Below are positions 2,709-10,598 of a DNA stretch of 64,000 nucleotides, piece by piece (positions within the stretch are counted from its first letter, which is position 1; each line of letters begins with the position of its first letter). The position numbers were made by a program, and so were the translations under genes. The notes beneath the pieces were generated by a model. That model was not told where the DNA came from, searched no databases, and saw nothing but the letters and a program-made list of their open reading frames with translations. The stretch is taken from sequence record PQ287642.1. The stretch is one strand, 5' to 3'.

Positions 2709-3305
2709 ATGAGTAAGTTTAGTGAGCTGCCGTTTAATTTGATGGATACAATACACCATCCAAAACCAACTCCTGAAGATGAAAAACGGCTCTCTGAAGC
2801 CCTTGATAAAATATTCCCCCATAATCCAAAATTGGAGCACAATCAAATGACCGCACTGTCCCCGAAAGAACAACTGGACCAAGCTGTAGAAGCTTCTGCT
2901 GTAGCAGCACAACAACTCATTAAAGAAGATGGCTGGGCCATTCTTCGCGAATTGTATCGCACTACAGCTGCTGCTCTTAATGCTACTTCCATTGTTATCA
3001 TTCCGGCGCTGGAGCGTCGTGAAGAAATTCTGAGTAAACTCAGTGATCCTGAAGGTTTCTCTAAAGATCTGCAAAACTGCATGTCTGATATTGAACAGAT
3101 GATCAGTGCTCTGGAAGCTCTTAGTATTCTTCACGTAAACAAAACTGGTACACCTGATCTGGCTGATCTCGATCAAATCGGTAAGCTGACTTTGGGTTAC
3201 GCAAATCTCCAACATAAAGTAGAAACAGCTGTTCAACCACTGCTGATGGGTCTCATTGCTAAGATGCAAGAAGCTGGTGTTGATACTGTTTCCTTCGTGA
3301 AATAA
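2709..3305 (+). CDS. Hypothetical helical protein
   Basis: 198-aa ORF with AGGAG upstream. Confidence 0.7.
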   Translation: MSKFSELPFNLMDTIHHPKPTPEDEKRLSEALDKIFPHNPKLEHNQMTALSPKEQLDQAVEASAVAAQQLIKEDGWAILRELYRTTAAALNATSIVIIPALERREEILSKLSDPEGFSKDLQNCMSDIEQMISALEALSILHVNKTGTPDLADLDQIGKLTLGYANLQHKVETAVQPLLMGLIAKMQEAGVDTVSFVK

Positions 3306-3316
3306 GGTAATACAAA

Positions 3317-4918
3317 ATGCAAGAGCTTGATATGGATAAAGAAGACAATTATCCTGCTGAGGGTAATTGGGAACAGCAAGCTGATGCAGAAGTAGAACAG
3401 GGGCCCACGGGTCCCACTCTACCAGACGCACCTGCGGAAGAAGTATCTTCTTCGCCTGCTGTTGAACTACCTCCACTGGTAATTGACCAGAAACCAGTTA
3501 ACTTCACTGAGACACGTTCTTGTTCTAGTGAAGCTATTCCTGGTATGACCTCTTTGATGAGTTTCATTCTAGAAAACCCCAAGACCTTTAACCAGGTATT
3601 GGAACGTCACTCGGCGCTATTGAATGGAATGCACCAAGGTGATCTCACTACTACTAGCAGTGACCGAGATTGGTTGATTTCTCTAGTAGCTGGTATGAAC
3701 CATACTAACCTTGACCCCACTCCTATCGGTGGGACGGAACGTGAAGGTTCTGTATGGCAACAAGGTATTACTGGTCATGATAACGGTAACCTTATTCGAC
3801 CAGGCCGCCCTTCTCAAAAGATCGATCGTAATAAACGACACAGTAAAGAAGAACTGTTGGCATACCTCTCCAAGAAATCTGGTCTTGGTGCGACATACGA
3901 AACGTTTATGCCTCGTTCGGGTATCTGGCTTCGCCTGCGTGCTCCGACACTTACTGAAGTAGTCGCATTGCAAACAGAAATGCAGCAGATCAAGCTCCGG
4001 CTGGGAATGCAAACCAAAGGCATGTCGTTCTCTAACGCTGGTTCCGTAATGATGAACGCGATGACTGACCTGGCTCTGTCTTGTGTTATTGCATCGAACA
4101 AGTCCTTCATTACTCCAAGTGACCTGGAACATGAACTATCGATCTTTGATGAAGCTATCCTGCATCATGCCCTAGCTTCTACAATGTACATTGATGGATT
4201 CAACTACGACGTTCCATGTATTGCAGACCCGGACAACTGTACGGCTCGTATCACTGCAAAACTTAACATGTCGTCTATCGTTTGGTTTGACAACACTGTA
4301 TTCAGTAATGATCAGCGTAAATTTATAGCTAAGAAATTTGCACCTGCTACGGATGAAGACTTCAAAGCTTACCGTGAAGGTTTCGGTATTGGCGGTAAGA
4401 AAGTATTCTGGTTTGGTGATATTGGTGTTCGTCTTGCTATCCCGACTATCGCTCAACGTAAGATGGCTGCTTCTCAGTGGTCTCAGACATTGATCGAAAT
4501 GTCTCAAGGTACATTTAACGAACCGCCACATGGTGTTCAACGTTCAGCGTACATTGATAAACTGAGTAAAGCTACTATCGCCATGCAGTACGCTCATTGG
4601 GTAGATGGTATCTATGAAAAGGACGACGATGTAGAAGACTTCGAAGATCAACTGCTTTCCGACGATCAAGAAATCATTAGTGATTATCTGGCGAACACTC
4701 TGAGTGATCCGCAGTACGCGGAGCAGTTCTTTGATACCGTACATGAGTATACTAACTCTTGTGTACTGGCTGTGGTAGCTCTTCCATCGCATAACTGCAA
4801 AGAATGTAAAGGTCCTCAGGGCCAAGCATTCAACGAACGTTTCCCGCACCTTGTACCGCTAGACATGATGGCAATATTTTTCACGTTGGCGGGCCAGAAA
4901 GCCAAGCACCTGGAGTAA
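3317..4918 (+). CDS. Putative tail/baseplate-hub assembly chaperone (T4 gp26-like / gpG-like; phiKZ gp77-like)
   Basis: 533 aa; two Cys pairs (VPCIADPDNC, HNCKEC) and a C-terminal PLDxxxIFF ending typical of myophage tail chaperones; function is inference. Confidence 0.55.
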   Translation: MQELDMDKEDNYPAEGNWEQQADAEVEQGPTGPTLPDAPAEEVSSSPAVELPPLVIDQKPVNFTETRSCSSEAIPGMTSLMSFILENPKTFNQVLERHSALLNGMHQGDLTTTSSDRDWLISLVAGMNHTNLDPTPIGGTEREGSVWQQGITGHDNGNLIRPGRPSQKIDRNKRHSKEELLAYLSKKSGLGATYETFMPRSGIWLRLRAPTLTEVVALQTEMQQIKLRLGMQTKGMSFSNAGSVMMNAMTDLALSCVIASNKSFITPSDLEHELSIFDEAILHHALASTMYIDGFNYDVPCIADPDNCTARITAKLNMSSIVWFDNTVFSNDQRKFIAKKFAPATDEDFKAYREGFGIGGKKVFWFGDIGVRLAIPTIAQRKMAASQWSQTLIEMSQGTFNEPPHGVQRSAYIDKLSKATIAMQYAHWVDGIYEKDDDVEDFEDQLLSDDQEIISDYLANTLSDPQYAEQFFDTVHEYTNSCVLAVVALPSHNCKECKGPQGQAFNERFPHLVPLDMMAIFFTLAGQKAKHLE

Positions 4919-4956
4919 TCAACGAGGACCCCCGGCATAGTCGTCTAACAATTAAT

Positions 4957-5379
4957 TTGGAGGACGACAACGGGCACGTTACAATGAACTCTTTCGGTCG
5001 CAAGACTGTTAATGGTAAGAGTGCATTCGATGAACTCGTGCGAACGCTAGATGCCGTAAGGCCAGCTATTGCCGAAATGTTGACCAGGAAGGCCTACCAT
5101 AAAGACTACGGTATTTTCGATCATGATTCACCAGAGGCTGATCCTTTAGATCTGGTTAGAATGCATCCTAAGGAAAACGTCGTAGAAGGTGGACCTGAAA
5201 GAACTTGGATACGGAAGTTTGTCAATTACAAGATCAATGACATTTATGGTTTATCTTTACTAGAGTTCTTTGAACTACCCTTTAATGATTGTTTGTTCAT
5301 GATTGAACTTGCAGAGTCGAAGGCTATTCAAAGTACATCGCAAGCTAGACAAATCGAGAAAGATCTTGGATTAAAATAA
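4957..5379 (+). CDS. gpT/T4 gp51-like chaperone extension (phiKZ gp76-like); probably made as a -1 frameshift fusion
   Basis: YGLSLLEFFELPFNDCLFMIELAE motif; no well-spaced RBS; frame open from 4810 across the 3' end of the upstream gene. Confidence 0.55.
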   Translation: MEDDNGHVTMNSFGRKTVNGKSAFDELVRTLDAVRPAIAEMLTRKAYHKDYGIFDHDSPEADPLDLVRMHPKENVVEGGPERTWIRKFVNYKINDIYGLSLLEFFELPFNDCLFMIELAESKAIQSTSQARQIEKDLGLK

Positions 5380-5394
5380 AAAAAAATAAAGCAT

Positions 5395-5427
5395 AGCTCC
5401 TACCCGAAGGTAGGAGCTTTATGCCGT
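5395..5427. terminator. Bidirectional hairpin with TATG tails
   Basis: AGCTCCTACC-CGAA-GGTAGGAGCT between convergent genes; TTATGCCGT on +, TATGC plus a U-run on -. Confidence 0.85.
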
Positions 5428-8624: not shown

Positions 8625-10598
8625 TTAGAGCAGCTTACCTCCCATGACCGCAAGATCGTAGGGATGGTCATTCCTCAGTGTGTAGAGGAAACTGCCAGGA
8701 TTATTCAACGGCTCATGTTGCTTCTCAAACGACATCGCACCAGCAAGAGAACGGGACATCATCAGTTTGTTGTATTTTTCAAACTGACCCGTAATACCCG
8801 GCTTAGGCAGACGATAATCGCGTTCAGCGATAGAGCGCACCATCATAGCATAAACCAGAACCTCACAGTGAACGGCATTCAAAGAGAACTTCTCATTCAA
8901 CAGCGACACAGTGGCTGCCAAAGCATCAACTGGGTCTTTGTAGTTCTTAAGATAAGTCTTGCTAGTAAAACCTACCTTATCTGAGCTCAGTTTAGACCCT
9001 TCAGTATCACTACCAGAGTGCAGGAATGACTGAATACGCTTCATCACTTCGTACATGTTTACGTGCTTATTAGGCAACGTCAGGAACGGCAGGGCAAAGT
9101 CAAACCCGGCCATATCGATCACGATATTATCACGAGCGTCAAGTTCCCAACGTACACGTTTGATATGTTGCAGCATTTCAGTCGATAGACTAGCTCGACG
9201 GTTATACAGCGACACCGTCAATACATCGCCTTCGTCTACTCCATCAACCGTCCGTACCAAACCAATACGGGTCAGTTCAGAAGCACTCGGTGCTGGATAT
9301 GCACTAAGGTCATCGATCATCAGAATATCAGCCAGGTTCTGAGCTTCGTTACGACCGATCATCAAGCGGAAACCTTTGCCCGAGAGTTCTTTCTTCAGAT
9401 AAAGAGTTTCAGCCGCAGATCCAGTGCGCAGGTACTTAGCTTCGACGCCACCAATCTGATACTGTTCTACAGCCGAGGTTGCATCAGTGTGTTTTGTCGA
9501 CAATACCGCAGAAGTGATTTTGTCACCCATGGATACAGCCGATACCTGACCAATGACAGTTCCTTTTGGAATAGAGAAACTTAGTCGCCCATAACACCGC
9601 GAACATACACCCTGAGGATCCGGATGCACACATCCCAAAATAGAACGCATCTTAATCTTTTTACCGATAAGATGTTTCTCATCCCCTTTCAGCCAGTCCA
9701 GTTGACCTGTCTGTTCGTTCAGATAGTACTTACCACGAAGAGCTTTCAACGTACCCTGCATTACAGGGAAGTCGATCAAGTGACCATTACAATCACCAGT
9801 GTGTAGGTTCTGTACATACTGAGCAATCAACTGAGACTTCCGGTTGAAATACTCGGTTACACGCAGTAGCTCTTTGTTATACAACAGAGCTTTGGTACCC
9901 GATCGGGATTCGATCATGTTTTCATACAGACCCCAAATACCATCAATGTAACCAGTGGTACACGGCTCACTGAAAATATCAGAGTTAATGTCTGTCGGGA
10001 AACCACGTGGTCCGTATGCCTGAAGCAATTGCTCCATTTTCTGCGTACCCGAGCGCAGGCCCTCAATGATGCTGTTACCACGGAACTGTGTTTCGTCGTT
10101 GAATGCTTCTTTGATCATCCCGTAAGAAATGTTTTCAATCCCGTACGTAGTAGGCTGTACATCTTGGTTAGCCTTTCTAACTGCCGGGTGATTGTACACT
10201 TCCATAATGTCAAAGATCGACAGGGTTGCAATGTAAGCACTCAGTCGAGTAGTGGTTTCATTATAAAGCCAATTCTTTCCTTCAATAGCCAGTTTAGCCA
10301 AAACCTCTGGATCGATCTGTTCACCACTCCATGCATGAATACCCCAAATAACTTTGTTCAGGTATTTCACAAGAGATTTAGAGGTAACCCGAGTAGATGC
10401 CAGATGGTAATCTTTCAGAACCGGGGCATCAGGGAAAGCTTTCAGTGGATACCAGAGCAGAACCGACAGCTTGGTGATCCGATCTTTTGCATAGAGTTTC
10501 TCTCCGTCATCAAAGATGATCTCGTGCCATTCACTTGGAATCGCCCAGAGTTCATCGTAACTCATATTGAGAAGATCACGTGCTTTATACTGATTCAT
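8625..10598 (-). CDS. Non-virion RNAP beta' C-terminal subunit (phiKZ gp74-like)
   Basis: 657 aa; GPRGFPTD, bridge-helix-like ESRSGTKALLYNK, Zn motif CSRCYG. Confidence 0.85.
   Translation of the reverse strand: MNQYKARDLLNMSYDELWAIPSEWHEIIFDDGEKLYAKDRITKLSVLLWYPLKAFPDAPVLKDYHLASTRVTSKSLVKYLNKVIWGIHAWSGEQIDPEVLAKLAIEGKNWLYNETTTRLSAYIATLSIFDIMEVYNHPAVRKANQDVQPTTYGIENISYGMIKEAFNDETQFRGNSIIEGLRSGTQKMEQLLQAYGPRGFPTDINSDIFSEPCTTGYIDGIWGLYENMIESRSGTKALLYNKELLRVTEYFNRKSQLIAQYVQNLHTGDCNGHLIDFPVMQGTLKALRGKYYLNEQTGQLDWLKGDEKHLIGKKIKMRSILGCVHPDPQGVCSRCYGRLSFSIPKGTVIGQVSAVSMGDKITSAVLSTKHTDATSAVEQYQIGGVEAKYLRTGSAAETLYLKKELSGKGFRLMIGRNEAQNLADILMIDDLSAYPAPSASELTRIGLVRTVDGVDEGDVLTVSLYNRRASLSTEMLQHIKRVRWELDARDNIVIDMAGFDFALPFLTLPNKHVNMYEVMKRIQSFLHSGSDTEGSKLSSDKVGFTSKTYLKNYKDPVDALAATVSLLNEKFSLNAVHCEVLVYAMMVRSIAERDYRLPKPGITGQFEKYNKLMMSRSLAGAMSFEKQHEPLNNPGSFLYTLRNDHPYDLAVMGGKLL

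Follow-up and report, generated by a model that had tools for sequence, protein, structure and literature searches.

Programmed -1 ribosomal frameshifting in phages is best known from the tail assembly chaperones of the lambda gpG/gpGT type (also P2 E/E+E' and Mu gp41/42; Xu, Hendrix & Duda 2004 as cited in PMC9024508, and described in PMC5009743), in which a -1 slip a few codons before the stop of the upstream ORF gives a minor, C-terminally extended fusion alongside a major short form. The arrangement is conserved across very divergent phages even though the proteins diverge and annotators call two genes, and a stimulatory RNA structure is often not obvious. In phage T7, a -1 frameshift on a GUU_UUC-type U run near the end of gene 10A adds a short C-terminal extension (10B) to a minority of capsid protein molecules, a shift that has not been described outside a narrow phage group. 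In bacteria, ribosomes slip -1 on X_XXZ_ZZN or Z_ZZN motifs in E. coli dnaX (tau/gamma) and in the OrfA/OrfAB genes of the IS3 family, setting a fixed ratio of two products (PMC4066793, PMC5009743); those sites use A_AAA_AAG with clear stimulators (an upstream SD-like element, a downstream hairpin or a pseudoknot), and the dnaX shift truncates the protein rather than extending it. Nested products are also made without frameshifting: T4 gene 26 yields 26 and 26' by an internal in-frame start, and its product gp26 and gp51, both members of Pfam PF12322 (T4_baseplate), are listed as baseplate hub assembly chaperones, gp51 being needed for assembly but absent from the particle (PMC3004832).

Here we examine a 64,000-nucleotide stretch of a Pseudomonas Pawinskivirus (record PQ287642.1, hereafter the window), in which a sequence-only reading had proposed a -1 programmed frameshift giving a G/GT-style tail-chaperone pair. 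The sequence features on which that proposal was based are confirmed at their coordinates, whereas its interpretation is only partly supported: comparison strongly supports a -1 frameshift, but not a conserved pseudoknot or membership of the G/GT chaperone family.

Results

Sequence features of the gp77 locus

ORF1 runs from ATG 3317 to TAA 4916-4918 on the plus strand (533 aa), ends ...NCKECKGPQGQAFNERFPHLVPLDMMAIFFTLAGQKAKHLE, and is the homolog of phiKZ gp77, PhiPA3 gp074 and 201phi2-1 gp136. It matches phrog_4585 at 1e-156, tblastn finds it in 214 phage records, and the family comprises 1651 clusters at 50% identity. The AlphaFold (AF2) model has a pLDDT of 85.6 and a pTM of 0.84, and residues C301, C308, C494 and C497 are invariant. 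Near its end, I-F-F is encoded ATA TTT TTC, so that A_TTT_TTC (4876-4882), covering the last base of Ile520 and the codons of Phe521 and Phe522, lies in the phase of ORF1, 11 codons before its stop. It is the only phased heptamer in the overlap. The -1 frame is stop-free from 4810 to 5379; its first NTG codons are TTG 4957 and ATG 4984, and a GGAGG (4959-4963) lies 20 nt before ATG 4984. A slip would give 522 + 165 = 687 aa with the junction ...IFF/HVGGPES... (a predicted junction peptide spanning ...IFF/HVGGPESQAPGVINEDPR; the phiKZ equivalent would span ...TFF/YFGG...). Of 36 phased slippery-type heptamers inside long open segments of the window, only this one is followed by a long -1 open frame (165 codons, against a next best of 33 and a median of 7), which is more than chance.

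In the dual-coding overlap (4882-4918) the ORF1 tail TLAGQKAKHLE* is read in frame 0 and HVGGPESQAPGV in frame -1. The -1 frame extension (4882-5379, plus strand; 165 codons plus stop) matches phrog_12109 and is the homolog of PHIKZ076.4, PhiPA3 gp073 and 201phi2-1 gp135; the phiKZ partner of gp77 is PHIKZ076.4 and not gp76, as the sequence-only reading had named it. Its AF2 model has a pLDDT of 83.8, with a confident helical domain at residues 48-161. Directly upstream of ORF1, a co-oriented ORF (2709-3305, plus strand) matches phrog_14050 and is the phiKZ gp78 homolog; a gp78-like ORF directly precedes the gp77 homolog in every annotated relative, and the two probably share an operon. A 10-bp GC-rich hairpin at 5395-5418, between the end of the extension ORF and the convergent minus-strand genes, is a likely terminator marking the end of the gp78-gp77 transcription unit.

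Conservation of the frame relationship and the slippery run

We compared the junction in 17 GenBank phages found by tblastn, 34 IMG/VR loci, 7 distant phages including Goslar, SPN3US and Bacillus phage AgentSmith, and 4 divergent metagenome loci. In about 58 of 58 loci, from Pseudomonas, Burkholderia, Ralstonia, Xanthomonas, Erwinia, Salmonella, E. coli, Klebsiella, Vibrio and Bacillus phages, the second ORF (ORF2) is in the -1 frame, where 1/3 would be expected, and that frame is open from at or before a phased N_TTT_TTY run (T5 in two loci) at the homologous position. In L042 and L065 (two of the compared loci) it opens exactly at the heptamer, and in phiKZ, Psa21, D6 and Phabio 12 nt before. 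The window's heptamer is non-canonical at its first base and its T run is only 5 long; relatives carry T_TTT_TTT/C/A/G, G_TTT_TTY or A_TTT_TTY, most of them the canonical T_TTT_TTY, two loci (L036 and pVa-21) have NTT_TTT, resembling the T7 site, and U_UUY is present in all of them. One of the three seed patterns used in collecting loci contained FFTL, although the tblastn loci and the exact-lookup loci were not selected that way.

The length of the extension after the heptamer is near-constant (151-176 aa in 41 lineages), whereas the first ATG/GTG/TTG lies anywhere from codon 8 to 85 and the first ATG from codon 14 to 136. phiKZ has no start for 85 codons, yet its sequence aligns throughout, and tblastn alignments reach back to the slip site in phiKZ, PhiPA3, Psa21, Noxifer and others. 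Annotated ORF2 lengths range from 75 to 182 aa. An exception to the open frame is RVTF4, which has a stop in the -1 frame 58 codons after the site. ATG 4984, used as the ORF2 start in GenBank records of this phage group (131-aa product; annotated in HHBS36_1 and HPP-Temi), is not a conserved start: the Met sits inside the conserved GHV.x..FG motif and is replaced by L/H/F/Q/N in relatives, and the GGAGG upstream reads GGATG in HPP-Temi.

Coding constraint around the proposed slip site

The stretch annotated as intergenic (4919-4983), which holds the conserved SRL...D.NGH part of the extension, evolves as protein-coding sequence in the -1 frame: mean pairwise divergence at codon positions 1/2/3 is 0.37/0.28/0.62, the same pattern as the ORF2 body at 0.45/0.36/0.64. 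Residue H32 (4975-4977) is nearly invariant and lies upstream of ATG 4984. Conversely, third-position divergence of ORF1 is 0.60-0.65 upstream (0.60 in the 20 codons before the site) and falls exactly at the slip site to 0.16 at the FF codons and 0.34 after it. These codon-position statistics rest on protein-guided alignments. The longest identical run against HPP-Temi (69 nt, 4866-4934) covers the site and the overlap, while the region overall is 81% identical. The first Phe codon is TTT in 44/44 sequences and the second in 39/46, against 32% TTT (68% TTC) overall in these genes; other conserved Phe columns are TTC in 35/40 and 30/38. FF(T)L is also conserved as protein, so that part of the T-run conservation is amino-acid constraint, which the codon-choice control addresses only for synonymous positions.

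We looked for natural in-frame fusions, but none of the 150 best of 1651 family clusters carries the extension in frame, all ending at the profile end; the longer family members examined (P0066, P0068, P0069 and P0075) proved to be extended at the N-terminus.

The proposed pseudoknot is not conserved

The sequence-only reading had proposed an H-type pseudoknot downstream of the heptamer. The complementary segments exist in the window (TTGGC 4886-4890 with GCCAA 4901-4905, and CCAG 4894-4897 with CTGG 4910-4913). However, RNAalifold on 20 homologous junctions predicts no pairs, the named pairs are kept in 63% of cells, no more than in shuffles, without covariation, and the local fold of the window is weaker than shuffles (z = +1.69). 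The pseudoknot is rejected as a conserved element. No SD-like stimulator is visible upstream of the site in the aligned junctions. Such stimulators are not obligatory for phage frameshift sites.

Relationship to tail chaperones and baseplate hub assembly proteins

Membership of the G/GT tail-assembly-chaperone family is not supported. Neither part has a Pfam hit, the proteins are 533/687 aa instead of roughly 140/280 aa, and the only tail-assembly-chaperone structure among the BFVD matches of the ORF1 model has E = 3.0 (rank 49); the extension matches only its own family in a fold search. The locus is not between tail tube and tape-measure genes, its neighbors being RNA polymerase beta-subunit fragments, a helicase, virion/head proteins and small hypothetical proteins. 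Searches of PDB sequences gave nothing, PHROGs returned only families of unknown function, and a PDB fold search with ORF1 gave nothing below E = 1.

The sequence-only reading had suggested a check against T4 gp26/gp51. A Foldseek search of BFVD with the AlphaFold model of ORF1 finds several predicted structures named 'Baseplate hub assembly protein, T4-like' or 'baseplate hub subunit' at E 3.7e-5 to 1e-3 (TM 0.52-0.60 on the target), the C-terminal ~340 residues of the model superposing on them, and the AgentSmith homolog is annotated as a baseplate hub assembly protein. Both families have invariant Cys pairs. However, ORF1 is more than twice as long, and neither it nor the AgentSmith homolog has any Pfam hit, with no match to the PF12322 HMM above the gathering score, whereas T4 gp26 and gp51 score 216 and 178 bits. 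Alignment of the ORF1 profile with single T4 gp51 or gp26 sequences using hhalign was not significant, and against a gp51-family profile the match was weak, at a probability of 33% and E 4.6e-4 over 59 columns. There are only hints of absence from the virion: the 201phi2-1 gp136 record lacks the mass-spectrometry note that the neighboring gp138 carries, and gp81 and gp82 (numbers taken from locus tags HOV27_gp081/082) do not occur in the Goslar virion-structure preprint.

Discussion

We propose that the gp77-family gene of this Pawinskivirus, and of phiKZ-like jumbo phages generally, is decoded in two ways (probability about 0.82, on comparative sequence evidence alone and without protein-level support for the fusion). 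In this view most ribosomes read ORF1 to its stop and make the 533-aa protein, while a fraction slip one base backwards on A_UUU_UUC, either because the tRNA-Phe pair re-pairs on AUU_UUU or because the P-site tRNA-Phe alone re-pairs on U_UUY, and continue in the -1 frame to 5377 to make a fusion of about 687 aa (residues 1-522 plus 165 new residues). The second gene annotated from ATG 4984 would then be mainly, perhaps only, the C-terminal extension of the first. What comparison shows is that the frame relationship, the slippery run, the open frame and the coding constraint all begin at the slip site and are conserved across very divergent phages; that the slip is ribosomal, that the trans-frame protein is made and that slip efficiency sets a fixed ratio of short to long form are inferences. 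The inferred expression architecture is that of lambda G/GT, but the slippery site here is a U run encoding Phe-Phe and, in contrast to dnaX and the IS3 family, no stimulator is conserved.

The alternatives appear unlikely. All ~25 annotated records checked treat the locus as two ordinary genes, with ORF2 translated only by its own initiation and the overlap incidental or reflecting translational coupling; the window does have an ATG with a GGAGG nearby, and in some lineages (Psa21, D6) an ATG lies 18 codons after the site, close to the ORF1 stop. However, the start position is not conserved, the conserved motif and coding signature lie upstream of the starts, the GGAGG is distant and lost in HPP-Temi, and neither the constant -1 relationship nor the reversed Phe codon bias and drop in synonymous divergence beginning exactly at the T run fit this view. 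Non-canonical initiation (ATT, CTG, ATA or similar) just after the ORF1 stop, giving a free ~150-aa protein that contains the conserved N-terminal motif, cannot be excluded from sequence alone, as the coding signature can be shown cleanly only after that stop; we consider it as improbable as the two-gene reading, because no conserved near-cognate codon or ribosome-binding site is visible in the aligned junctions, the synonymous constraint starts at the heptamer, inside ORF1, and the TTT bias is left unexplained. Slightly less improbable is transcriptional slippage, in which the phage or host RNA polymerase adds one U at the T run in a fraction of transcripts and standard translation gives the same fusion. 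Many relatives carry runs of seven T's, U7 runs are noted as under-represented in E. coli genes, possibly because of transcriptional slippage (PMC4066793), and the slippage behavior of the phage's own multisubunit RNA polymerases is unknown. Against this, the run is only T5 in the window, the Noxifer group, L036 and pVa-21, and T6 in many others, shorter than the runs that usually give efficient polymerase slippage, and what is conserved is the codon phase N_TTT_TTY rather than run length, although that phase is also fixed by the FF amino acids.

The function of the pair is more weakly inferred. We speculate, tentatively and from fold similarity to predicted structures only, that the protein is a non-virion morphogenetic factor related in fold to the T4 gp26/gp51 hub assembly proteins, the long form adding a helical partner-binding domain as the T part of lambda gpGT does. 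A bolder possibility, which we regard as doubtful, is that the gp77 family is the jumbo-phage counterpart of these chaperones and its frameshift obligatory, the fixed short:long ratio controlling assembly of the baseplate hub or the tail-length/ejection apparatus. This would extend the principle of the frameshifted assembly chaperone from lambda-type G/GT to an unrelated protein fold, in more than 1000 phage lineages, from Pseudomonas to Bacillus, including all the model nucleus-forming phages. Alternatively, given its neighbors, the pair may act in a non-morphogenetic process such as transcription or replication inside the phage nucleus, which would be more surprising still.

We found no published report of this frameshift, and no paper retrieved links phiKZ-like phages with frameshifting; 'gp77' in those papers refers to other proteins, namely a Goslar capsid decorator, a PhiPA3 RNA polymerase subunit and the PCH45 small terminase. 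If confirmed, this would be a recoding event conserved across a whole family of giant phages, comprising phiKZ, PhiPA3, 201phi2-1, Goslar, SPN3US, the Erwinia and Ralstonia jumbo phages and at least one Bacillus phage, that is currently mis-annotated in every record examined as a gp77-like gene plus a small 'hypothetical protein' of arbitrary length. Confirmation would correct the proteome of the main model systems for phage-nucleus biology, add a ~78-kDa protein that nobody has looked for, and, by forcing the short-only or long-only form, give a simple genetic handle on the function of a conserved gene of unknown role. It would also show that a U-run Phe-Phe site without an obvious RNA stimulator can be maintained as a frameshift signal over very long evolutionary distances.

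Identity of the locus and the gp77 junction

The region 3317-5379 is 100% identical to Pseudomonas phage HHBS36_1, 99.5-99.7% identical to the PA1C / PS119XW / BRkr group and 82% identical to HPP-Temi (genus Pawinskivirus), all of which are ~300-kb phiKZ-like jumbo phages. ORF1 (3317-4918, 533 aa) is the homolog of phiKZ gp77, PhiPA3 gp074 and 201phi2-1 gp136 (tblastn; phrog_4585), and the downstream reading frame is the homolog of PHIKZ076.4, PhiPA3 gp073 and 201phi2-1 gp135 (phrog_12109). The neighbors are a gp78-like ORF directly upstream, a divergent virion/head protein gene, RNA polymerase beta-subunit fragments, a helicase and small hypothetical genes, and this is not a tail module. The genes annotated as RNA polymerase beta-subunit fragments and the split helicase ORFs (1083 + 438 nt in HHBS36_1) flank the locus at 403-2617 and 8625-10598 (minus strand); the helicase appears as two adjacent CDS in this phage group but as one in phiKZ and PhiPA3. 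A 10-bp GC-rich hairpin at 5395-5418, flanked by an A-rich tract on the plus strand and the corresponding T tract on the minus strand, lies between the convergent genes and is likely a bidirectional terminator closing the gp78-gp77 unit.

A sequence-only reading had proposed a programmed -1 frameshift near the end of ORF1, and each of its statements about the sequence proved correct. A_TTT_TTC lies at 4876-4882 in the phase of ORF1, the ORF1 stop is at 4916-4918, the -1 frame is open from 4810 to 5379, and the first NTG codons in that frame are TTG 4957 and ATG 4984, with GGAGG 20 nt before the ATG. The complementary pentamers and tetramers of a proposed H-type pseudoknot are present where that reading placed them, and the fusion would comprise 522 + 165 = 687 aa. 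Within the 64-kb window, 36 phased slippery-type heptamers lie in long open segments, and this is the only one of them that is followed by a long -1 open frame (165 codons, against a next best of 33 and a median of 7).

Comparative analysis of gp77 junctions

Homologous junctions were collected by four routes, namely 17 GenBank phages found by tblastn, 34 IMG/VR loci, seven more distant phages (SPN3US, Goslar, Deimos-Minion, pVa-21, Halocynthia phage JM-2012, Centimanus and Bacillus phage AgentSmith) and four divergent metagenome representatives retrieved by exact look-up. In all of them the downstream ORF is in the -1 frame relative to the gp77 homolog, and the -1 frame is open from at or just before a single phased T run that encodes the conserved Phe-Phe of the motif FF(T)L. 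The run takes the form T_TTT_TTT/C/A/G in phiKZ, 201phi2-1, Goslar, SPN3US, AgentSmith and many others, NTT_TTT (T5) in pVa-21 and in the locus designated L036 in our collection, and G_ or A_TTT_TTY in the rest. The -1 frame opens exactly at the heptamer in two further loci, L042 and L065, and 12 nt before it in phiKZ, Psa21, D6 and Phabio; the open frame therefore consistently includes the site but is not maintained upstream of it. The only locus in which the -1 frame is interrupted is that of Pseudomonas phage RVTF4 (L010, 2561-3084), where there is a stop 58 codons after the heptamer and the rest of the extension continues in the +1 frame, in which the record annotates a 106-aa ORF. This could be a sequencing error or assembly indel, or a genuine disruption of the long form.

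The arrangement is also present in the 200-kb Bacillus phage vB_BspM_AgentSmith (L054, 5374-7526), with T_TTT_TTA, a 171-codon -1 frame and an annotated 77-aa 'gene 12' at its end; there the gp77 homolog sits near genes annotated as central spike protein and virion structural protein. In several distant relatives (L062 at 3533-3982, L064 at 3702-4160, and Goslar, L056, at 3073-3633) a macro-domain protein gene directly follows the extension ORF, which is not the case at this position in the window.

Measured from the heptamer, the extension is nearly constant in length, at 151-176 aa in 41 distinct sequences, whereas the first ATG/GTG/TTG in that frame lies anywhere from codon 8 to codon 85 and the first ATG from codon 14 to codon 136. 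phiKZ has no possible start for 85 codons after the heptamer, yet its sequence aligns with the others over the whole stretch. Annotators and gene callers accordingly give the 'second gene' lengths from 75 to 182 aa, and the reference annotations disagree strongly: PHIKZ076.4 (phiKZ, L003, 2549-3052) is annotated as 80 aa starting 219 nt after the gp77 stop, while Deimos-Minion gp272 (L057, 2535-3083) is annotated as starting 78 nt upstream of the heptamer, overlapping gp273 by 136 nt. ATG 4984 falls inside the conserved motif NGHV.x..FG; the nearly invariant His is upstream of it, the Met is replaced by other residues in relatives, and the upstream GGAGG reads GGATG in the closest relative, HPP-Temi.

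Evolutionary signatures at the proposed slip site

We compared 27 Pseudomonas-type lineages. The stretch after the ORF1 stop and before ATG 4984 diverges at -1-frame codon positions 1/2/3 by 0.37/0.28/0.62, the same pattern as the body of ORF2 (0.45/0.36/0.64), which shows, on this comparative evidence, that it is translated in that frame. Third-position divergence of ORF1 is 0.61-0.65 along the gene and still 0.60 in the 20 codons just before the site, but drops to 0.16 at the two Phe codons and 0.34 in the nine codons after them, so that the extra constraint starts at the heptamer. Phe codons in these genes are 68% TTC, and two other conserved Phe columns are TTC in 35/40 and 30/38 sequences; at the site, however, the first Phe is TTT in 44/44 and the second in 39/46. 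Against HPP-Temi (81% identity over the region), the longest identical run is 69 nt and spans 4866-4934.

We also looked for natural fusions of the two parts. An exhaustive profile search found 1651 clusters (50% identity) of the gp77 family, and all of the 150 best end within a few residues of the end of the profile; the longer members that were examined are extended at the N terminus. Across this diversity the two parts were never found simply fused and never placed in another frame, which is what selection for making both products from one message predicts.

The proposed H-type pseudoknot was not supported. RNAalifold on 20 junctions predicted no pairs, the named pairs form in 63% of cells, equal to the shuffle mean and with no covariation, and the 78 nt downstream of the site in the window itself fold less well than shuffles. 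No SD-like element precedes the site. The region is dual-coding, which limits covariation tests, and many phage frameshift sites work without strong stimulators; the absence of a detectable stimulator thus lowers confidence about the efficiency of the slip but not about the existence of the signal.

Predicted structures of ORF1 and the extension

AlphaFold gave a confident model of ORF1 (pLDDT 85.6, pTM 0.84), with a disordered N-terminal segment of 46 residues and with the slip site in the last predicted helix (residues 517-530). A fold search of the PDB returned no neighbor. Against predicted viral structures, the model matches, after its own jumbo-phage family, several ~250-aa proteins named 'Baseplate hub assembly protein, T4-like' or 'baseplate hub subunit' (E 3.7e-5 to 1e-3, TM 0.52-0.60 on the target), and the AgentSmith homolog (tblastn 1e-28) is annotated as a putative baseplate hub assembly protein. 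T4 gp26 and gp51 both belong to Pfam PF12322 and are listed as hub assembly chaperones, gp51 being required for assembly but absent from the particle (PMC3004832). However, sequence-level tests of this link, by Pfam search and by profile alignment to gp51 and gp26, failed or were weak. Four cysteines of ORF1 (C301 and C308, at 4217-4240, and C494 and C497, at 4796-4807) are invariant across 53 family members, and the T4 gp51 family likewise has invariant C85, C88 and C185. The invariant cysteine pairs of both families suggest, but do not prove, a shared metal site, inferred here from sequence conservation alone.

The extension begins with a Gly/Pro-rich, lower-confidence segment of ~45 residues that carries the GHV..FG motif, followed by a confidently predicted helical domain at residues 48-161; a fold search returned no relatives outside its own family. 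There are hints that the protein is not a virion component: the 201phi2-1 record lacks the mass-spectrometry note for gp136 that its neighbor gp138 carries, and the gene-product numbers gp81 and gp82 (taken from locus tags HOV27_gp081/082) do not appear in the Goslar virion-structure preprint.

Discussion

The interpretation offered by the sequence-only reading was thus borne out in part, the comparative data supporting a programmed frameshift but not the pseudoknot, which we reject as a conserved element, nor membership of the lambda G/GT tail-chaperone family. Independent initiation of the second ORF does not explain the constant extension length, the wandering starts, or the conserved residues upstream of ATG 4984. 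As to transcriptional slippage, U7 runs can cause polymerase slippage (PMC4066793); however, the run is only T5 in this phage and several others, which favors ribosomal slippage, and U_UUY and X_XXU_UUY are recognized -1 motifs in bacteria (PMC4066793). We cannot exclude a contribution by the phage RNA polymerases. The frame relationship, the open frame from the T run and the coding constraint beginning there are shown by comparison, whereas the fusion protein itself, in the absence of direct protein evidence, the ribosomal nature of the slip and any function are inferred. We put the probability of ribosomal -1 slippage at the FF codons at about 0.82 and hold a programmed frameshift, by any mechanism giving the fusion, to be somewhat more likely still, while a role as a hub/tail assembly factor analogous to T4 gp26/gp51 remains tentative.

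In how it would be expressed, the pair works like lambda G/GT, with a -1 slip a few codons before the stop, a minor extended product, conservation of the arrangement despite sequence divergence, and habitual mis-annotation as two genes. It is not a member of that family: size, fold and position were each compared with it, and none of them agreed. The U-run slippery site recalls the T7 10A/10B frameshift. In fold, ORF1 may be related to the T4 gp26/gp51 hub assembly proteins; gene 26 of that family also makes two nested products, but by an internal start.

We found no report of this frameshift in the literature searched. Nothing linked phiKZ, Chimalliviridae or jumbo phages with ribosomal frameshifting, a comprehensive 2016 review of frameshifting does not mention phiKZ or jumbo phages in the part examined, the PRFect paper does not mention them either, and none of the ~25 annotated records uses a joined CDS. 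The mechanism is well known, and what is new is its occurrence in this very widespread gene family. Given its presence in Bacillus phage AgentSmith, the signal predates or exceeds the Gram-negative nucleus-forming phages, and it is of clear practical interest to those working on nucleus-forming phages.
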